A stretch of 63,214 nucleotides of DNA, counting the filler, from Octopus bimaculoides (Eukaryota): NCBI RefSeq assembly GCF_001194135.2. It is 8 parts of 7 records of this genome, joined end to end, with 100 filler letters (N's around TTAATTAATTAA, not from the genome) between each part and the next. Parts side by side here need not be neighbours in the genome. Positions count along the whole stretch, not along the records: positions 1 to 10,467 come from NC_068998.1; 7 more parts are not named here. The stretch is one strand, 5' to 3'. The notes under the pieces were generated by a model. The model was not told where the DNA came from and searched no databases. It saw nothing but the letters and a program-made list of their open reading frames with translations. The translations under genes were made by a program, and so were the position numbers. This document shows, in pieces, positions 1 through 10,567 of the stretch; the first letter of the stretch is position 1, and each line of letters starts with the position of its first letter.

Positions 1-20
1 TATATATATATATATATATA

Positions 21-186
21 TACGACAGGCTTCTTTCAGTTTCCGTCTACCAAATCCACTCACAAGGCTTTGGTCGGCCCGAGGCTATAGTGGAAGACAC
101 TTGCCCAAGGTGCCACACAGTGGGACTGAACCCGGAATCATATGGTTCATAAGCAAGCTACTTACCACACAGCCACCCCTACGCCA
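21..186 (-). mobile_element. tRNA-derived SINE family A, 5' part
   Basis: ggctgtgtggtaagtagcttgctt...ccttgggcaagtgtcttc...gaagcctgtcg; more than 10 copies in the window. Confidence 0.85.
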
Positions 187-273
187 ATGCTTATTTTTTA
201 CTCAACCTGATACATACAGTCACACCACTCAACTCTAATGATAAACTAGAAAAATATTTATATTTTCAATTCC

Positions 274-279
274 TTTATT
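274..279 (-). promoter_or_regulatory. Polyadenylation signal of the peptide gene
   Basis: AATAAA 44 nt after the stop codon. Confidence 0.6.
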
Positions 280-322
280 CATCTCAAAGAATTACATTTT
301 CCCTAAAAGTGGAAGACCTTTC

Positions 323-344
323 TTAACCAGTTTGTTCCAGGACA
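323..344 (-). CDS. Secreted Cys-rich prepropeptide, last coding exon: (I)VLEQTG*
   Basis: Strong acceptor ttttctttcttttctttttttctag|; phase 2 fits the previous exon (AT|T = Ile); TAA stop at 325..323; AATAAA at 279..274. Confidence 0.8.
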
Positions 345-409
345 CTAGAAAAAAAGAAAAGAAAGAAAATCATTGTAGAGAAAGAATTTAATTATTAATT
401 AAAAATTTA

Positions 410-590
410 AGGCAATGAGCTGACAGGATGATTAGCACACCAGGTAAAATGCTAAGCCATATTTCCATCTATCTTTGCTTTTTAGGACAATAAAATAAGA
501 AGCAGTCGAGGACTAGGGGTTGATGCAATCAACTAGCCCCTTCTTCTCAAATTTCAGGCCTTGTGCCTATAGCAGAAATGATTATTAATT
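410..590 (+). mobile_element. tRNA-derived SINE family B, decayed
   Basis: aaggc..gagctgacagga..ttagcacaccagg head and cttgtgcctatagcagaaa tail. Confidence 0.65.
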
Positions 591-664
591 AAAAATGTAA
601 GCAGTTTCATAACTTCATAATTAGAAAATATTGAAGTTGAGATGAAGTTCATAGCTTTCATCAG

Positions 665-860
665 GTTTGATTTGCATGCCTACTCTCATCTATGGTCAAG
701 AATGTTGAGTAACAAGAGAAGTAGTAAGACTGCAAGTACAAGCGGTCAAAATGGGGTTCCTCAGAAGGATATCTGGAATATTGTCATTCTACATGGTGCA
801 TGATTTGAAGATTAAGTAGCCTCTCCAAATCAAGTCACTTCTTCTCCAGACTGAACGGTC
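665..860 (+). mobile_element. RTE-clade LINE ORF2 fragment, decayed
   Basis: Translates PTLIYGQEC*VT...KMGFLRRISG...LLLQTER with stops; resembles the RTE post-RT region. Confidence 0.7.
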
Positions 861-892
861 AGTTTCAGCCACCATGAACATGTGATTAGTTG

Positions 893-1260
893 TGGTTGGC
901 ACTCCATCGCTTACGACGTCGAGGGTTCCAGTTGATCCGATCAACGGAACAGCCTGCTCGGGAAATTAATGTACAAGTGGCTGAGCACTCCACAGACACG
1001 TGTACCCTTAACGTAGTTCTTGGGGATACTCAGCGTGACACAGTGTGACAAGGCTGACCCTTTGAATTACAGACACAACAGAAACAGGAAGTAGAAGTGA
1101 GAGAAAGTTGTGGTGGAAGAGTATAGCAGGGTTCGCCACCATCCCCTGCCGGAGCCTCGTGGAGCTTTAGGTGTTTTCGCTCAATAAACACTCACAACGC
1201 CCGGTCTGGGAATCGAAACCGCGAGTCCGCTGCCCTAACCACTGGGCCATTGCGCCTCCA
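893..1260 (-). mobile_element. tRNA-derived SINE family C, near full length
   Basis: Head ggaggcgcaatggcccagtggttagggcagcgg with pol III A/B boxes; further copies at 6671, 15630 and 50117. Confidence 0.88.
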
Positions 1261-1305
1261 CTTTCAGTCAAGTAAGGAAGAAAGAAACACATAACATCAA
1301 CTTAC

Positions 1306-1420
1306 ATTTTGCATGCTGCTGAGCACATAAATTGCCAGAAATCACCAACATATTTTTCACAAGCTGCCACACAACCACCAGATAAATCTAGTTGCTGTAG
1401 ATGTTTAATAATGTCATCAA
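1306..1420 (-). CDS. Secreted Cys-rich prepropeptide, middle exon: (I)DDIIKHLQQLDLSGGCVAACEKYVGDFWQFMCSAACK(I)
   Basis: Acceptor tttttaatctctttcag|, donor |gtaagt; 115 nt open in phase 1 to phase 2, matching both flanking exons. Confidence 0.88.
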
Positions 1421-1499
1421 CTGAAAGAGATTAAAAACATCAACAATGATAAAAAAATAATAACAACAACAGTTTCTTTGTGGTTACGTATATGTAAAC

Positions 1500-1730
1500 T
1501 TTAAAGACAGGTGAAAATGAATAAAAGATGTAAGGTGGTAAAGTGGGAGAATCATTAGCACTTTGGTCAAAAGGCTTAGACTATTTCTTCTGGTTTTATG
1601 TTCTGAGGAGGTCAACTTTACCATTCAACCTTTCGAGGTTGATAAGATAAGGATCGGTTAAAACTGGGGTTGTTTTACTCAGTTTCTTCTCCTCCTCCTC
1701 CTCCCCCATAGGAATTTCCAGTTGTCCTCT
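1500..1730 (+). mobile_element. SINE family B, decayed
   Basis: gaggtcaactttaccattcaacctttcgaggttgataa core. Confidence 0.55.
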
Positions 1731-1929
1731 ATGTTACAAGTCTGTGGCCCCTCTGCTTTCTCATCAAATTCCTTAATTAGGGTGTCCCTAAATCACTGAC
1801 CATACTAAGAGAATAATTTCACTTGACAATAGTGAGAACAAAACACAGTCACTGGAAAAATACATGAATTGTAAAAATATATACAAAAATTAAACTAGGC
1901 AAGAGTCTGACCTCTTCCAAAGGAAAAGA

Positions 1930-2150
1930 GAAAAATATCACTTTATGTATTCACTTTAACAATTCCTCATATAACTGTCCATTGAGTACATGTGGACTAG
2001 TTCAATAGCATTAAACATGGACAGTTCATGTTGGTGAGGGAGAACAAACAACATGTCCATGATATTGGTGAGATAATCCAAGCTAGGCTGATTATAGCAG
2101 TGATTGGTCCACATTGTTAGTGGAGCATTCATGCTTACACTGTAATGGGA
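1930..2150 (-). mobile_element. Tc1/IS630-like transposase remnant
   Basis: Frameshifted HGHVV / LPHQH..FNAIELV resembles the GH.V..LPPYH..LNPIELVW motif. Confidence 0.35.
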
Positions 2151-2372
2151 GAAAGGAAAATGGTGAGATCAGGCTCAAACTTCGATCACGTGACCACAAT
2201 AGTACCAACTATAACCATGTATGCGCAGAAGGCAGTGTGACAATAATAAAGATATGTTATGGTGAAAGTGCGGATAATTTTTGACTTTCCCTCATGTGTG
2301 TGTGTGTGTGTGTTTTTGTCTCAAAATAAAGTGGTCCTTCTGAAGAAAATACATATAACTTGGAAAACTTAC

Positions 2373-2463
2373 TTGAGAATCTCTTATCTATTACATCATC
2401 AGAATACACACTGGCACTCAGTACCAAAGGCACAAGAGCCAAGAAGAAAAGTACGATTTTCAT
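2373..2463 (-). CDS. Secreted Cys-rich prepropeptide, first coding exon: MKIVLFFLALVPLVLSASVYSDDVIDKRFS
   Basis: ATG at 2463, 12 nt inside an exon with acceptor tcttcttattttaccag| (exon start 2475); classic signal peptide; dibasic KR; donor |gtaagt, phase 1. Confidence 0.88.
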
Positions 2464-2789
2464 GGTATTCAGTTTCTGGTAAAATAAGAAGACATACAGA
2501 ATCTATGAGACAGGATTACATACATATATATATACACACGTATACATACATATATATATAGACTGGTAATAAGTATCTTTATCTAATCACTCTTCTGCTC
2601 TTTAATTAGAATGTGCTCCTCTTTCAGGTTTATGATTTACTGACAATATATCTATACATATGTGTATATATGGGAGAATATACAAATAATAACAACAGAC
2701 GAGGACAACAGATGTGTATATACCTATACATATATTTATATATATGCATATATACATATACATACATATTGCATGCATGCATGCATAAT

Positions 2790-3350
2790 ACACACACATA
2801 CATGCCCTGATGCAGTACCAGGCAGTGGCCCTCATGGCTTTTGATCTTAACTGATTGTTAAGTGTTATCATGAACATTGTTTTGTCTTGGTATAAAAGAT
2901 GGGCTATAGTAAATATTCTGCTCAATACCACAGATTTGCTTGTCTGTTGCTTGATCTTAACCAGTTGAGCATGTCCCTTAGTGGCTGACAACATGTGCAT
3001 CTCTGATCACAAGCAAAATTAGTTGGGGAGCATCATAGCCATGTGTTGAAAGGAATTCTTTGGGTTTTGGATAATTCACCTCTGGAAACATGGGTGTTTC
3101 ATTCAACATCCTTAAACAACCCATATTCAAGGACCTTTTGAGCAAGGTGGGCAACTCGACCTGAAGAAAATTCTAACAGGGCCTCACCTCCAAGGTCATG
3201 CATTGTTTTTCTTGATATGAGATCACCATGTCATGCACATATGGTTGTGACGCATGTGCCTAGTGTACCCTTATCAGATGGGTAGTCATGATGGGTATAC
3301 TGGGCTTCGTATATTTTACCCCAGTGTCACTTTGATGACATACACAGCAA
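2790..3350. repeat. Probable interspersed repeat of unknown class
   Basis: About 560-bp non-coding block bounded by (AT/AC) microsatellites; recognised from memory of octopus repeats, single copy in this window. Confidence 0.4.
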
Positions 3351-3599
3351 AGTAATATACATGCATGTGTATATATATATGATGGATTTCTACAGTTTCC
3401 ATCTACCACATTCTCTCACAGGGCATTAAATCAGCTTGGGGTAATAGCAGAAGACAGAGGTGGAAGGTGCCATGCAGCAGGACTGAACCTGAAACTGCAT
3501 AGCTGCAATGCCATCTTCTTAACCACATAACCATATTAGCACCTAGACCCATGCCTGAAAAAATATTCAAAGAATTGATAGAAAGAAAACAATTCTTAC

Positions 3600-3625
3600 C
3601 TGGAGTTCTGCAGCTTATATGGGAT
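3600..3625 (-). other. Candidate 26-nt 5'UTR exon of the peptide gene
   Basis: ttcttttttgacag|atcccatataagctgcagaactccag|gtaaga; no ATG; same strand, 1.1 kb upstream of the first coding exon. Confidence 0.4.
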
Positions 3626-4177
3626 CTGTCAAAAAAGAACTTGATTCAGACATATATATATACAATTCGTATCGGTCACCTTATGTTTAATTCTCATTAA
3701 AGTGGGTTTTCATGTTATCATATCTATTCAGGAAACCAAGTCACATGATAATGTTATGAAATCATATCAGAGTTAACTTTAGTGATTAATAAAGCCTACA
3801 ACTTTATTTACGTACATGTATGTATGTGTGTATGTACATACATATGTATATATCTATGTATGTGCATGTCAGGTCACTCTTGATTGCTACTGGTAATATA
3901 TAATCCATTAAAACATGCTGCATGGTCGGTTCATTGGTGACTAAACTGGCAACCCCACCAGGCTTGCTTGGTGAAGAAGGTGATTGTTGGACACCCTGCA
4001 AGACAAAAAATAAGACCTGTCCAAGGGCGGAGGAACTCATGAGTAGTTAATGGCCATCAAACAAATATGTGTAAATATGTATATATCGCTTTTTCATATA
4101 TTCCTATGTATGTAAATATGTACATATCGTTTTTTTCATATATTCCTATATGTATATATATATATATGTATATATCA

Positions 4178-4719
4178 TCATCTTTTAGCATCCGCTTTCT
4201 ATGCTGGCATGGGTTGGACTGTTTGAATGAGGACTGGTGAGACAGAGGCTGCACCAGGCTCGATCTGATCTGGCAAAGTTTCTACAGCTGGATGCCCTTA
4301 ATAATGCCAACCACTCAGAGTGTAGTGGGTGCCTTTACATGCCACCAGCATGAAGACTAGTCAGGCAGTTCTGGCAACGACCACACTCAAAGGTATTTTT
4401 ACGTACTACCTGCATGGGAGCCAGTCTGGTGGCACTGGCAACGACCACGCTTGAATGTTGTTTTTCACGTGCCACCAGTACAGGAGCCAATCCGTGGTCT
4501 GAACTAAATTCGACGACTGGCACCCATGCCAATGTTGTCTCCTTCATTGGACACGAAACTCGGCTTGCGAAGACCTGTTGGGGCAAGCGAAAGCGAAATC
4601 GTGATGGCACCTGTGCCCAGCGTCGCCTTTCTGGCACTTGTACCGGTGGCACGTGTAAAGACTTTCAAGTGAGATCATTGCCAGTGCCGCTGGACTGGCT
4701 CTTGTGCAGGTGGCACATA
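4178..4719 (-). mobile_element. RTE-LINE 3' end / derived element with internal tandem units and (GAT)n tail
   Basis: gctggcatgggttgg...tctacagctggatgccct...gtgccaccag repeats; homologues at 16347, 17560, 38890 and 40590. Confidence 0.8.
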
Positions 4720-5124
4720 NNNNNNNNNNNNNNNNNNNNNNNNNNNNNNNNNNNNNNNNNNNNNNNNNNNNNNNNNNNNNNNNNNNNNNNNNNNNNNNNN
4801 NNNNNNNNNNNNNNNNNNNNNNNNNNNNNNNNNNNNNNNNNNNNNNNNNNNNNNNNNNNNNNNNNNNNNNNNNNNNNNNNNNNNNNNNNNNNNNNNNNNN
4901 NNNNNNNNNNNNNNNNNNNNNNNNNNNNNNNNNNNNNNNNNNNNNNNNNNNNNNNNNNNNNNNNNNNNNNNNNNNNNNNNNNNNNNNNNNNNNNNNNNNN
5001 NNNNNNNNNNNNNNNNNNNNNNNNNNNNNNNNNNNNNNNNNNNNNNNNNNNNNNNNNNNNNNNNNNNNNNNNNNNNNNNNNNNNNNNNNNNNNNNNNNNN
5101 NNNNNNNNNNNNNNNNNNNNNNNN

Positions 5125-5824
5125 CAAAGAATTTCACATTTTCCCACAATATTTCTAGCCCCAAATGGCTTATTTTTTTTCATACCTAGCACTATGTCTT
5201 TCTCCATTTCTAAGTTAAGGGTAGAAAATAAAGCAACCCTGAAAAACACACAACTGATCTTTAAACACAGACGCACAAAATAACAGCAATCAAATAACAG
5301 CAGAGTGCTCAACAAGCACCAACGATTTGACCTTTACCTGTACTCTTGACAAGAGATGCCAATTAGTTTTTTACACCTGCAAGGCTTGTTCGTATTAGCC
5401 CGAGTTGCTGGATAACTTTTCGTTCCTTCAAGAATATTATAGAACGGAAACTTTTCATGGATTGGAATTTAAATCCTTATCTCTATAGAAATTTATTGTT
5501 TCAAGAAAACATTGAATTACTTTTGATTTTTACGATTATAGATAACAACTAGGGCACAAACTTCTGAGAACGAGTCAGGTGTGTGTGAATGATGTCAAGA
5601 GAATGTCTGCTACGAAACGAATGATGTTTTTTGACACAGGGCGTCTCTAAGACGACTATCAGATGCTGAATGAAAATAAATAAAAGGAGCCTGAGTTATT
5701 GACTGTAATTACATACTTGAAGTCAGTGTTGGCAGAAATTAAATCAGCTTGCAAATACATGTTCACTTTCCTAAATTTATACTCAGGCTAAGCCCAAGCA
5801 GCCTGAGTGCTGGAGTCACCACTG
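5125..5824 (-). mobile_element. hAT-like non-autonomous DNA transposon end abutting (TA)n
   Basis: Terminus reads CAGTGGTGACTCC on the minus strand; other end lies in a gap. Confidence 0.4.
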
Positions 5825-5865
<41 letters not shown>

Positions 5866-6670
5866 AGAAATGAGGGCAGGGAATCGTCAATTAATAATAG
5901 AATTAATAATTAACAATTTTGCCAAGTAGTTCAGTATGAAAAAAACCTTTATCGGTAAAACCATTTATCATCATAAATATAAGGGATTAGCAATTGAGTT
6001 GCTTCNNNNNNNNNNNNNNNNNNNNNNNNNNNNNNNNNNNNNNNNNNNNNNNNNNNNNNNNNNNNNNNNNNNNNNNNNNNNNNNNNNNNNNNNNNNNNNN
6101 NNNNNNNNNNNNNNNNNNNNNNNNNNNNNNNNNNNNNNNNNNNNNNNNNNNNNNNNNNNNNNNNNNNNNNNNNNNNNNNNNNNNNNNNNNNNNNNNNNNN
6201 NNNNNNNNNNNNNNNNNNNNNNNNNNNNNNNNNNNNNNNNNNNNNNNNNNNNNNNNNNNNNNNNNNNNNNNNNNNNNNNNNNNNNNNNNNNNNNNNNNNN
6301 NNNNNNNNNNNNNNNNNNNNNNNNNNNNNNNNNNNNNNNNNNNNNNNNNNNNNNNNNNNNNNNNNNNNNNNNNNNNNNNNNNNNNNNNNNNNNNNNNNNN
6401 NNNNNNNNNNNNNNNNNNNNNNNNNNNNNNNNNNNNNNNNNNNNNNNNNNNNNNNNNNNNNNNNNNNNNNNNNNNNNNNNNNNNNNNNNNNNNNNNNNNN
6501 NNNNNNNNNNNNNNNNNNNNNNNNNNNNNNNNNNNNNNNNNNNNNNNNNNNNNNNNNNNNNNNNNNNNNNNNNNNNNNNNNNNNNNNNNNNNNNNNNNNN
6601 NNNNNNNNNNNNNNNNNNNNNNNNNNNNNNNNNNNNNNNNNNNNNNNNNNNNNNNNNNNNNNNNNNNNNA

Positions 6671-6853
6671 AGAGTGTGAGAAAGTTGTGGTGGAAGAGTA
6701 CAGCAGGGTTCGCCACCATCCCCTGCCGGAGCCACGTGGAGCTTTTAGGTGTTTTCGCTCAATAAACACTCACAATGCCCGGTTTGGGAATCGAAACCGC
6801 GATCCTATGACCGCGAGTCCGCTGCCCTAACCACTGGGCCATTGCGCCTCCAC
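6671..6853 (-). mobile_element. SINE family C, 5' half
   Basis: Near-identical to 1085..1260. Confidence 0.88.
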
Positions 6854-7245
6854 AGAGGTGAGTGTAACTTAGTAAGAAATTAACATGGTGCAGTAGAGGA
6901 TTAGCAATTTTACAACAGATATCTTTCTGAGATCTGCATTCTTCTGTCCATGACACCAACACACATTTTGTGCACGTGTACAACTTATTATTTGTATAAT
7001 TCTTTCCTGTATCTCACTTTCTTTCTGACTCTCTCACACACATACAACCACTCAACAACTAAGTTGAACTTATGACAGTCAATAACTAAATGAAACAATA
7101 TCTGTGTGTGTGTGTGTGTGCGCGTGCATGAATAAATAGATGTGTTTGTATGTTTATGTATGTATCTATATATATACATATATGTGTTTATATAGATAAA
7201 TTAGATAAGCATGTGCTTGTTTAATTTTGTATGTGCATATGTATG

Positions 7246-7286
<41 letters not shown>

Positions 7287-7296
7287 NNNNNNNNNN

Positions 7297-7330
<34 letters not shown>

Positions 7331-8712
7331 GTGTGTATTTGTGCGTGTATGTATGTACATACACATACACACACATTCAAGTCAAATGAGAAAAATATCT
7401 GTGTAGTTACTGACACCTGCTAGAAATAACAATGCACCCTCCCTCAATGTCACACACATTGGCTGAGGAGAAAAATAAAGACTATGTTTGTAGCTTGAAT
7501 ACTTAACAGCAGCATGTATATGAATAAATTTATAACATCAGGCATGCACATACAGATATATAGAAATATATACAAATCTATGAAAGTAGCATAGCCACAA
7601 ACACACATATATATTTACAATTATGTTAAACTCTGGGTTTTCTTCTTTTCCTTTTTAACTTTTCTCTTTCTCTCCCTAACTTTCATATTCATTTCCATTT
7701 TTCTGTTTACATCTCAGTCTCTCTTACTGAATCTTTTCCTTTCTTTCTCTCATTTTCTTTCATATCACTTTGTTGCTCCCATTTCCCTGACCCTCACCCT
7801 CTTTCTCTCACACATATGCACACAGGTATCTGACAAACGATGTTTCAACTAAAATTATCCAGAAACAACTGAAGTGTTCCTTTTCCCTGTTCTCAGCAGA
7901 CAATAACTTCCCAAAGAGATATTGGAAGAATGTGAAATATGGTTGCAAAAGTGAGGAAATTTTAAGAGAAGAACAAGAGGAAGAAAAAGTGATAAACATT
8001 GAGAAATAAGAATGCAGAGAAAGAAGGAAAATTATGGAAATTAAAAAGCATAAAGATAATATAAAGGACAAAGAAATAAAGATTGCAAAAAAAAAAAAAA
8101 AGAGAGAAAGGTGGAATAAATAGAACACCATTCTGTGTTCATGCTTTATTTCACTTCAGCCCTCACATTTTCTCTGTATGCAGTCAGTGGCCATGTCTCA
8201 CTACCTTGCAGCATTGCATGGTACTGAGTTAGGGGCACTGGATGCAAAAGAAGAAAAAAAAGAAGGGCTTTCTAATAGATCCTTACACACATTTAAAAAA
8301 CCATTTAACCAAATCACTTTCAAATAGATTTGAACAGGATGAATGAAAGTATAATAATAAAACAACAAAAAGAACCATGCATGAGCAGATGCCAAAATTA
8401 CAGGCCTGTCTGCTTGTTTACTTTGAAATATCAAGATCAGCAGAAAGAATTATCAGGTAAACTGATAAAAGACTGCCAAGAAAAAAACAATCAGCTTGCT
8501 TTACTTTTCTGCCCCCTCAGTTTGCAATGCTATGGTAGTACTTCTCAGACATTTGTAGATATGATCTACTTGAATTTTATGAAGGTATTCATTAGAAGAA
8601 ATAGAGGAGTCCATGCGAGCTTACACAGTCACGATGTTAGTTGTACTGTGTGTTGGCAGCACAATAATAGGGCTTTTCAAACAAATGCAGATTTGGTCTG
8701 GTTTGCCAAGAT

Positions 8713-8965
8713 CAGTGGTTCCCAACAGGTGTCCATATGGCTCCTGAAAACAATTTTGCCTTAAATGTTGTATTGGTGTGTATTGCAAGAAACAGCTAGG
8801 TTTCTTTAACGTTTTACATAGTTCAACCTAAACAACTTGTGAAAAACAAAATAGTAGTTTTGAAAGAAGTTTCTATAAAAACGAGTTTCTAAACAATGAA
8901 TGGCTATGTGGGTCCACCAGAGTAAAATAGTAACCAACGGGGTCTATAGATTAAAAAGAGATCAA
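8713..8965 (+). mobile_element. hAT (Charlie-like) MITE remnant
   Basis: Starts CAGTGGTTCCCAAC; matching right TIR not seen. Confidence 0.4.
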
Positions 8966-10567
8966 GTCGTATTTATGTGGTACTGGCTGAGAGAAACTTT
9001 CCTTTGTGAAAATGATATCAAATTTCTGTAAACATTCGTACTGTAAGTAGAACAGAAGAAGATGCATTTAAACTTTTCGTTGTTGTTATTTACTCTGAAA
9101 CAAAATTCAAAGATTTAGTTCAACATCGTATATTTTAGTTCAATAGTTTATTTTTCACACTGAAATGAAAATTGTAGAGGCTACGGCCGGAATAAACTTG
9201 TAGTAACGCTGTGCGCATGCGTAGTCTCACGCATGCATGGAATTCAACAACCAAGCTTTCCCGCTTTGATCTGTCTCTTTCTTGCTGGCCAGCGATTGAG
9301 CAAGGACGTGTTTAGCTGTCTCTCTCCATCTTTCGAACTTACGCTAGACAGCTCGCCCACATCTACATACCAACATCCATGCTCACACAGAAGACGTCTC
9401 AACAAACAAGAGCTAAAGATATATATATTCCACCTTAAATAAATGTTGTTATGTTGATAGTCTGGAGTTCAGCGTTCCGTTAATTCTTAATTTTATATAG
9501 GAAAGTCAGGTATACATCTAATGATGTATCACCCACTTTCCTATAAACTGAAGCATAGTTGTGCACTGAATATGTCAATTTCGAGGAAAGATTGATGCTA
9601 ATTTAGTTTTTATCCCCACGAAATCTCATATTCAAAATTGAATAACACAGTTAAACCATAATTAGCCTAAATGAATTGAACGACACAACACCCTCTCATT
9701 CTTTATTTAGAACTTAGTATTAAGTTCTTTGCCATTTAGACATTTATATATGAACTTTCTAATGAATTTCGGTTTGTATTTTCCATGTTTTGAAATATCT
9801 TACTTTTTTGAGACACACCTAATTACATCTTGCAGTGCACGGTTTGGGAGTCACTGGGTTAATCAGACCCTTGTGAGTGAATTTGGTAGAGGAAAAATGT
9901 GTGAGTCCATTATATATGTATGTTTTTGTGTGCCCTAGCAATTACTTGACAAACCGTGCCATGTAGTGTGACTGAGCCAGAAGCCACTTGACTGCAAAGT
10001 AAGCTTCTTACCTACACAGCCATACCTGTGTCCATTTCATGTACCTTTACACCTAAAATGAACAAAAGAAAAATATAGGACCTGGTGTGATTTTTTGAGA
10101 CATTTTGTACACGTTTTGGATCTATTTTAAAACGGGGGCGCCAGTTTTCATTTATGTTTTATGTAGTGTTTTTGGTACGGAAAGACTTTCAAACTTCGTA
10201 TACTTATCTATTTTGTGTTATAGAACAGAAAAATATTTTTGTATTCGAATTTATTTCATGTAAAAAATTGTCTTATTTCGATAATTTCTACTAATCACTG
10301 ACGTCTATTCAGTTGAAAACAGTTAGCGCTGTAACGGTGTATATCATTAATCCCCTAACCCTAGAATCCGAACTCTAAAATTGTTACACACATAGATACG
10401 CACAGCGTAATTTATTATATAAACAATATATGCGTATAAATTACGATTAAACCAGATGAAATATGTCNNNNNNNNNNNNNNNNNNNNNNNNNNNNNNNNN
10501 NNNNNNNNNNNTTAATTAATTAANNNNNNNNNNNNNNNNNNNNNNNNNNNNNNNNNNNNNNNNNNNN

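Follow-up and report, generated by a model that had tools for sequence, protein, structure and literature searches.

A predicted disulfide-stapled secreted peptide of Octopus bimaculoides belongs to an undescribed, coleoid-restricted multigene family

Introduction

What does a short stretch of octopus DNA encode whose translation carries two CX3C motifs eleven residues apart, and is its product a relative of the helical hairpin toxins of cone snails and scorpions? The question is raised by positions 1306-1420 of a stretch of Octopus bimaculoides DNA (NCBI RefSeq assembly GCF_001194135.2; 63,214 nucleotides (nt), eight parts of seven records joined by filler, positions 1 to 10,467 being from NC_068998.1), which as a whole we call the window. 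A preliminary description of this segment had suggested a cephalopod peptide with a cysteine-stabilised alpha/alpha (CS-alpha/alpha) fold and an extra N-terminal helix, convergent with or homologous to such toxins, and possibly a channel-active toxin, pheromone or defence peptide. We report here the gene to which the segment belongs, the family of cephalopod genes around it, and what the conservation, predicted structure and evolution of its members suggest about their role.

Results

The twin CX3C motif lies in the middle coding exon of a four-exon gene

On the minus strand, window positions 1420..1306 form a clean 115-nt exon, the middle coding exon of the gene for UniProt A0A0L8FGZ6 (O. bimaculoides). 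The segment originally flagged is thus exactly one exon, with a splice site at each edge: a ctctttcAG/T acceptor with a polypyrimidine tract (AG at 1422-1421) and a consensus AAAT/GTAAGT donor (GT at 1305-1304). The exon encodes (I)DDIIKHLQQLDLSGGCVAACEKYVGDFWQFMCSAACK and the first two nt of the following codon. Unspliced translation of minus-strand 1430..1305 reads SLSVDDIIKHLQQLDLSGGCVAACEKYVGDFWQFMCSAACKM and then a stop, and the stops found on both flanks of this genomic frame are explained by the splice sites that bound the exon. The motif itself, Cys47-X3-Cys51-X11-Cys63-X3-Cys67 (CVAAC-EKYVGDFWQFM-CSAAC), is present as first described, at 1311..1373 on the minus strand; in six-frame translation, the whole window holds a single instance of the pattern C-X3-C-X11-C-X3-C, whereas 200 shuffles gave 0.01 on average. 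The longer string given in the preliminary description, FSIDDIIKHLQQL, is right for the spliced product and wrong for a straight genomic reading, which gives 'LSVDD'; the upstream exon (2463..2373) supplies F29 and S30 as well as the first base of the I31 codon, which accounts for the 'FSIDD...' of that string. Two other readings of the segment were discarded. Plus-strand 1306-1420 holds just a featureless 41-residue open reading frame (ORF), the motif being on the minus strand, and a prokaryote-style single ORF meets stops on either side of the exon, a difficulty that splicing resolves.

The complete gene runs on the minus strand from ~3700 to 255 and has four exons, one in the 5' untranslated region (UTR) and three coding, which together specify a 75-residue prepropeptide. 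The probable non-coding 5' exon occupies 3600..3697 (minus strand); its 3' end is fixed by the donor CTCCAG/GTAAGA, with 3600 as the last exon base, and its 5' limit is approximate. It joins an acceptor 12 nt ahead of the ATG (AG at 2477-2476). The first coding exon (2373..2475, minus strand) consists of those 12 nt of 5' UTR and, from the ATG at 2463, 91 nt of coding sequence that ends at a donor A/GTAAGT and translates as MKIVLFFLALVPLVLSASVYSDDVIDKRFS plus the first base of Ile31. Following the middle exon, the last exon begins after the acceptor ttttttctAG (346-345) with (AT)T GTC CTG GAA CAA ACT GGT TAA; its coding part (323..344, minus strand) completes Ile69 and adds VLEQTG before the TAA stop at 325-323, and an AATAAA polyadenylation signal lies in the 3' UTR at 274..279, ~45 nt past the stop codon. 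Spliced, the 91, 115 and 22 nt give the 75-residue product MKIVLFFLALVPLVLSASVYSDDVIDKRFSIDDIIKHLQQLDLSGGCVAACEKYVGDFWQFMCSAACKIVLEQTG, which is identical to a protein retrieved in an exhaustive HMMER search with the exon translation as query (UniProt A0A0L8FGZ6_OCTBM, 'Uncharacterized protein', hereafter P0001), so that the gene model has been annotated independently of our reconstruction. There is no second copy of the gene within the window, where just the 5' UTR exon resembles the models of paralogues.

The gene belongs to a family found in cephalopods

The HMMER search and two profile searches together produced 15 relatives, all of them from cephalopods: at least eight paralogues in O. 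bimaculoides, five members in O. vulgaris, two in Argonauta hians and one cluster from transcriptome assemblies of Sepia. No taxa outside cephalopods were gained from the second and third of these family searches, and the unspliced exon peptide, used as query in a word-indexed search of proteins, returned no candidates. Six long HMMER matches (P0002-4, P0007, P0008 and P0012) were set aside as spurious, being repetitive bacterial or eukaryotic proteins whose scores came from summed 'LDLSG..' repeats with the Cys unaligned. The gene is annotated but uncharacterised, and it is a member of an undescribed, coleoid-restricted multigene family (Octopus, Argonauta, Sepia) that is partly arranged in tandem.

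Gene structure is shared across this family. The window is collinear with the O. vulgaris P0017 locus through the promoter, all exons and both introns, which identifies P0017 as the orthologue of P0001. Chromosome OX597831.1 carries P0017 and a second O. vulgaris member, P0016, on one strand and separated by 30 kb (~42.06 and 42.09 Mb; loci L001 and L002), and P0009 lies on another chromosome. For the pair P0016/P0017, O. bimaculoides has one annotated counterpart. In each of the four genes compared (the window, L001, L002 and L003) the middle exon has a length of exactly 115 nt; the coding exons of P0016 and P0017 measure 91/115/22 nt and agree with those of P0001 in splice junctions and intron phase, those of P0009 are 94/115/16 nt, and the 3' boundary of the middle exon is common to Argonauta (L006) and Sepia (L004). 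The 5' UTR exon and its donor also recur in O. vulgaris, ahead of the orthologous gene at ~8800-8907 of L001, within a collinear block of 81% identity.

Evidence of transcription comes from Sepia RNA-seq. In contig L004 the first two coding exons are spliced and the last intron is retained, the coding part ending at the same junction as in the window, ...TGTAAAAT/GTAAGT, and contig L005 carries the fully spliced coding sequence, followed by AATAAA signals and a poly(A) tail. These spliced contigs show that the family is transcribed and that it is older than the split between octopus and cuttlefish. Two runs underlie the Sepia cluster; L004 comes from SRR19578103, which is part of an RNA-seq project on juvenile Sepia esculenta.

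The 13-member alignment, which spans four genera, has twelve invariant positions: M1, K2, L8, P12, K27, L43, C47, C51, F61, C63, A66 and C67. The X3/X11/X3 spacing is unchanged in all 13 sequences. Loss of the Cys in orthologues had been named beforehand as grounds for abandoning the proposed fold; the alignment, of orthologues and paralogues alike, retains all four in each of its 13 sequences. By per-column entropy, conserved hydrophobic and variable polar columns alternate with a helical periodicity.

Several database models of family members are corrected by these comparisons, as they carry spurious N-terminal extensions or read through introns. The O. bimaculoides models P0020 and P0022 begin 'MRIKHKVAGIGCIYIY...LQKLNT' upstream of the real Met-Lys signal peptide. 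The 5' UTR exon of the window is homologous to this N-terminal 'extension', and since a frame shift and a stop interrupt the window copy, the extension is probably a translated 5' UTR exon, an annotation artefact that would mask the signal peptide. P0011 ends ...CKM and a stop, and its transcript contig (L004, 830-845) retains the last intron at the same ...AAAAT/GTAAGT junction as in the window. P0021 and P0023 have no second CX3C and run into unrelated sequence (intron read-through).

The precursor has a secretory layout and an acidic mature peptide

As read from the sequence, the product has three parts: a signal peptide, a short pro-piece that is acidic and closes with Lys-Arg, and a 47-residue mature peptide with CVAAC-X11-CSAAC. 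Its N-terminus, beginning MKIVLFFLALVPLVLSAS, has the n/h/c layout of secretory signals (MK, a hydrophobic core of 13-15 residues and a c-region of small residues), and a hydrophobic N-terminal signal sequence is kept in all aligned members. The Lys27-Arg28 codons, a dibasic pro-peptide cleavage site just before the mature peptide, are at 2380..2385 (minus strand); the site is conserved in 13 homologues, with K27 invariant and R28 nearly so. Lys-Arg is the standard cleavage site of furin and of prohormone convertases.

The mature peptide of P0001 has a mass of ~5.1-5.2 kDa and an isoelectric point of ~4.5; with two disulfides, the calculated mass is 5117.43 Da for the amidated and 5175.43 Da for the Gly-extended form. 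Net charge across the 13 mature peptides ranges from 0 to -5 (negative in 12 of them), and the grand average of hydropathicity is above zero in every one. As the sequence reads, the C-terminal Gly75 may act as an amidation donor, which is plausible for P0001 and is not a trait of the family. About half of the members end in Gly (P0001, P0016, P0017, P0020) or in Gly-Lys (P0006, P0018), P0016 and P0017 sharing the ...LEQTG terminus; the endings of the others are ...VGN, ...GGGGN, ...IFQQ and ...TASP. A further variable position is the Asp42 column (codon 1388-1386), where 'LDLS' becomes 'LNLT', 'INLT' or 'LNLG' in the Sepia member, in A0A0L8GV66 (O. bimaculoides) and in P0018 (O. vulgaris). The LNLT and INLT variants would create an N-glycosylation sequon just ahead of the first Cys, and some members may be glycosylated.

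The peptide is predicted to be helical at both CX3C motifs

Structure was predicted with AlphaFold2 (AF2) for two inputs. For the 41-residue read-through translation of the exon, without an alignment, the model has helices at 3-13, 19-27 and 29-39 (mean predicted local distance difference test (pLDDT) 72), and for the precursor with the 13-sequence alignment it has helices at 31-39, 47-54 and 61-74 (pLDDT 61). The helices expected at both CX3C motifs, and the extra one ahead of them, are therefore also what AF2 predicts, at a pLDDT of 61-72. The predicted break between the hairpin helices falls at Gly56-Asp57, symmetric between Cys51 and Cys63, and the N-terminal helix segment SIDDIIKHLQQLDL is amphipathic, with a hydrophobic moment of 1.97. 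From the motif and the predicted secondary structure, placing the peptide in the CS-alpha/alpha (alpha-hairpin) structural class appears well motivated, though not proven. Its disulfides should be nested, Cys47-Cys67 and Cys51-Cys63, and this assignment is strengthened by the cone-snail peptide vil14a and the C2 module of the Drosophila receptor Grindelwald, both of them nested helical hairpins with identical X3/X11/X3 spacing.

A new sequence family on what is probably a known scaffold

The preliminary description had stated that CX3C-Xn-CX3C defines a helix-loop-helix class including the hefutoxins, the alpha-hairpinins and framework XIV conotoxins, and this agrees with the literature, in which motif and connectivity are common to kappa-hefutoxins, OmTx, flf14a-c and plant alpha-hairpinins (PMC7191063). 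The 11-residue central loop that it gave for these conotoxins is borne out by vil14a, whose sequence in PDB 6EFE is GGLGRCIYNCMNSGGGLSFIQCKTMCY, that is, C-X3-C-X11-C-X3-C. The bonds of vil14a are I-IV and II-III, its fold is CS-alpha/alpha and its precursor is unknown (PMC4278219). Like the octopus peptide, vil14a and flf14a-c are secreted by molluscs, and vil14a has the same loop spacing; they form a helix-loop-helix with I-IV/II-III bonds, and the octopus peptide is predicted to be helical at both CX3C motifs. The differences are considerable, however: the conotoxins have 27 residues and the octopus peptide 46-47, the octopus peptide has two parts that the conotoxins lack, a predicted amphipathic helix at its N-terminus and a hydrophobic tail at its C-terminus, the octopus family is acidic, and no sequence similarity between them can be detected.

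Homology to cone-snail or scorpion toxins, which had been entertained alongside convergence, was not supported by a comparison of the family profile with all PDB sequences (E<=10): from these toxins it yielded kappa-KTx 2.9 at E=1.2, and vil14a (6EFE) was not retrieved. Pfam gave nothing significant for the exon peptide or the 13 members, with ELH, CRF and Tim10/DDP absent at E<=10; its Conotoxin family matched one of the 13 members at E=0.19, below the cut-off of that family. A PDB sequence search with the single peptide returned just a chance leucine-rich repeat match. The searches thus detected no homology to conotoxins, plant alpha-hairpinins, scorpion kappa-KTx or small Tims, nor to any family in Pfam. 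Since cone snails and cephalopods belong to different molluscan classes, convergence is the simpler reading, and the sequences point to a new family on a known scaffold, for which convergence with the toxin hairpins would be the economical view.

The central loop of kappa-hefutoxin has 9 residues and is shorter than the X11 of the octopus peptide. Scorpion kappa-KTx toxins (kappa-hefutoxin, OmTx and kappa-KTx 2.9, PDB 7ZRU) have the CX3C...CX3C arrangement, nested disulfides and the CS-alpha/alpha hairpin (PMC7191063), and the weak profile match of kappa-KTx 2.9 at E=1.2 covers 'SddCieaCknpV'. These arthropod venom peptides are basic, have 22-28 residues and use a Lys/Tyr functional dyad (PMC7191063), whereas the octopus family is acidic and does not conserve the dyad. 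The best PDB profile match, which is not significant (E=0.13), was Grindelwald C2 (a tumour necrosis factor receptor (TNFR) of Drosophila, PDB 6ZSY), with 'FLC' before the third Cys in common. The 0.92 A structure of this module shows antiparallel helices with nested disulfides and the pattern Cys57-x3-Cys61-x11-Cys73-x3-Cys77 (PMC8024323). It shares with the octopus peptide an extracellular location and the X3/X11/X3 spacing, but it is part of the Cys-rich domain of a membrane receptor, follows a beta-hairpin X2 module and has no precursor processed at Lys-Arg. Identity of the octopus peptide as a TNFR domain was rejected on the E-value of 0.13, the predicted helix (not a beta-hairpin) before the motif, the lack of a transmembrane segment and the length of 75 residues.

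Plant alpha-hairpinins such as EcAMP1 and Tk-AMP-X2 have the motif XnC1X3C2XnC3X3C4Xn, C1-C4/C2-C3 bonds and a helix-loop-helix (PMC7191063). They are confined to plants, often derive from vicilin-type or multi-module precursors, are mostly basic antimicrobial or protease-inhibiting peptides and have no similarity to the octopus family. The octopus precursor has 75 residues, holds a single peptide and is encoded by a cephalopod gene, which sets it apart from proteins of plant or vicilin-type origin. Aplysia attractin is a small acidic secreted molluscan protein, an antiparallel helical hairpin with nested disulfides that serves as a water-borne pheromone, and so illustrates a use to which molluscs can put this kind of scaffold; attractin differs from the octopus peptide in having six Cys, another spacing and another precursor, without sequence similarity. 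The small Tims of the mitochondrial intermembrane space form nested-disulfide helix-loop-helices from twin CX3C motifs 11-16 residues apart and have no signal peptide. A small Tim identity was discarded on the secretory signal of the octopus protein, together with the lack of a Tim10/DDP match in Pfam at E<=10.

A fixed core and predicted helix surfaces that evolve near the neutral rate

Between P0001 and its orthologue P0017, the whole coding sequence differs by 15.5 nonsynonymous and 1.5 synonymous changes (nonsynonymous rate dN 0.094, synonymous rate dS 0.031, dN/dS ~3) and the mature part by 8.5 and 0.5 (dN 0.082, dS 0.016, dN/dS ~5). Over the whole coding sequence, P0001 and P0016 differ by 23.0 and 3.0 changes (dN 0.144, dS 0.063, dN/dS 2.3) and P0017 and P0016 by 13.0 and 2.0 (dN 0.078, dS 0.041, dN/dS 1.9), and across comparisons the mature-part ratio ranges from 1.7 to 5.0, on small counts. 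Flanking non-coding DNA of the window is 87-91% identical to the orthologous O. vulgaris locus; dN is thus about equal to the flanking non-coding divergence, which means that residues outside the core evolve no more slowly than neutral DNA. Four of the seven differences between the orthologous mature peptides are polar and charge-changing (K8T, Q12K, K25T and Q32T). The core, formed by Cys, Leu, Phe, Trp and Ala positions, has been fixed since the Sepia/Octopus split, while the helix surfaces evolve at about the neutral rate or faster. Toxins, pheromones, defence peptides and reproductive proteins, as secreted effectors or molecules of recognition, typically combine a fixed scaffold and a changing surface with tandem duplication and restriction to one lineage, a combination that is not typical of conserved neuropeptides.

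Sequence surrounding the gene

A SINE-like (short interspersed nuclear element) repeat occurs twice, at 1096-1168 (extending to ~1290) and 6673-6745 (to ~6860), the copies being 96% identical across 73 nt. The first lies inside the intron just downstream of the middle coding exon. Its ORF-like translation, MVANPA.LFHHNFL..., is likewise found twice, and neither ARAGORN nor Rfam calls the repeat as a tRNA; tRNA and Rfam scans of the window found nothing. Positions 1-189 belong to an interspersed repeat with many matches, on both strands, in two O. vulgaris loci (70-92% identity). Runs of N that mark assembly gaps interrupt the 5' flank of the gene at 4720-5124, 6006-6669 and 7287-7296, and ORFs spanning them are meaningless. 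Abundant microsatellites of the (CA)n, (TA)n and (TATG/TACA)n types, at 2290-2320, 2520-2560, 2600-2850, 4060-4250 and 7166-7420, yield long spurious 'YIYIYI' and 'CVCVCV' ORFs on both strands, and the first coding intron contains one of the (CA)n runs, at 60 nt from the start of that intron.

Discussion

Taken as a whole, the data are in our view best explained, with fair probability, by a secreted, disulfide-stapled, coleoid-specific and fast-evolving peptide that acts as an effector or ligand. Based on the sequence and on standard secretory-pathway biochemistry, we can propose how it would be made. The signal peptide MKIVLFFLALVPLVLSAS... would carry the product into the endoplasmic reticulum, where the two CX3C motifs, each on one face of a helix, could pair as Cys47-Cys67 and Cys51-Cys63 and so staple together two antiparallel helices joined by a turn at Gly56-Asp57. 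The N-terminal helix SIDDIIKHLQQLDL, amphipathic and conserved, would pack its hydrophobic face on this hairpin to give a three-helix miniprotein. An enzyme of the furin/prohormone-convertase type would cut after Lys27-Arg28 and remove the short acidic pro-piece, and in P0001 Gly75 could be converted to an amide on Thr74. Outside the cell, the peptide would then serve as a ligand or effector in which a rigid scaffold presents a diversifying binding surface. A role between organisms or in recognition, as a secreted defence, saliva or chemical-communication peptide, seems most likely from the sequences, and that of a conserved neuroendocrine messenger less likely.

Several points weigh against this explanation. 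The ~1-3 synonymous changes compare with a neutral expectation of 4-6, and a dN/dS above one is not statistically established; the orthologous pair P0010/P0013 is much more conserved, being nearly identical in the mature core. For the proposed helix packing, AF2 confidence is just moderate (pLDDT 61-72), and a Foldseek comparison of both models, which are small, with the PDB gave no usable match. The signal peptide and its cleavage were judged by inspection and not by a predictor. A search of the papers available to us, by sequence fragments, accessions and topic, found none on the peptide family. Finally, the signal, the pro-piece, the Lys-Arg and the C-terminal Gly or Gly-Lys would fit the precursor of a neuropeptide or hormone equally well.

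That precursor would be a lineage-specific one, made in neurons or endocrine cells, cut at Lys-Arg, amidated and directed to a receptor inside the animal. The layout is the classical one, with one peptide per precursor and a Lys-Arg whose Lys is invariant right before a conserved N-terminus, and both the near-identity of the P0010/P0013 cores and the Gly or Gly-Lys ending of about half of the members speak for it; the N-terminal pattern [FLI]S[IL]xD[IL][IV] also loosely resembles the start of ELH/DH44-type peptides. However, the mature peptide is no more conserved than the signal and pro regions, its rate of change being close to neutral (dN/dS 2-5, on small counts), the members do not all share the amidation signal, no Pfam family including ELH and CRF is matched at E<=10, and the passages on cysteine-containing peptides in a survey of molluscan neuropeptides (PMC6425005) hold no comparable family. 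We regard a neuropeptide or hormone as unlikely. Still less probable, in our judgement, is a venom or saliva toxin that acts like the CS-alpha/alpha toxins vil14a and kappa-hefutoxin on voltage-gated K+ channels of prey. A layout of signal, pro-piece, Lys-Arg and mature peptide is typical of the precursors of conotoxins and other venom components, the Cys spacing is that of vil14a, and the family, which is expanded and has tandem duplicates, evolves fast around a fixed Cys framework, all of which speaks for such a toxin. Pore blockers of the kappa-KTx type, though, use a Lys plus aromatic dyad (PMC7191063), whereas no octopus member is net positive. The Lys25/Tyr26 pair of P0001, not conserved in the O. 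vulgaris orthologue, is replaced by Thr/Tyr and Asp/Tyr in the closest relatives and by Asp/Asn or Ala/Ile in others, and together with the acidity this argues against a basic pore-blocking K+-channel toxin. The octopus peptide is also almost double the toxins in length, with an extra helix, resembles them in sequence at the Cys and nowhere else, and has its sole expression evidence in Sepia RNA-seq runs (one from a juvenile-cuttlefish project) with no link to a venom gland. The channel-active toxin suggested in the preliminary description is therefore not favoured: all 13 mature peptides are hydrophobic and without net positive charge.

The same acidity argues against a cationic antimicrobial or host-defence peptide resembling the plant alpha-hairpinins, which we consider very improbable even though C-X3-C-Xn-C-X3-C is the defining alpha-hairpinin motif (PMC7191063) and rapid evolution with expansion of the gene family is typical of immune effectors. 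The peptide is anionic and hydrophobic, the usual pairing of an acidic pro-piece with a basic mature peptide is absent, as neither of these two parts is basic here, and there is no similarity to known antimicrobial-peptide families. Least probable of all, to the point of being nearly negligible, is an exon derived from an intracellular or receptor domain, either a small Tim protein or a TNFR C2 module turned soluble decoy. Small Tims are defined by a twin CX3C, and Grindelwald C2 offers the best PDB profile match, with identical spacing and the shared 'FLC'; but an E of 0.13 across 22 residues is not significant, the octopus product has just 75 residues, with neither a preceding beta-hairpin module nor a transmembrane segment, and a cleavable signal peptide, along with the absence of Tim10/DDP at E<=10, rules out a small Tim.

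Returning to the secreted effector or ligand, we tentatively go one step further and propose, as a reading that falls somewhat short of probable, a coleoid-specific family of three-helix peptides that predates the octopus-cuttlefish split, was diversified by tandem duplication under positive selection, and constitutes a new bioactive class whose target would be unlike K+ channels. The components known from cephalopod venoms and secretions are mostly tachykinins, enzymes and other larger proteins, and to our knowledge few small disulfide-rich peptides have been described from these animals. If our reading is true, the family would represent a further independent origin of the twin-CX3C hairpin, beside those of cone snails, scorpions, plants and TNF receptors, and its members would offer peptide engineering a natural set of surfaces that vary on a single rigid frame of 5 kDa. 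The family would then also be a concrete candidate for the anonymous secreted signals that are specific to cephalopods.

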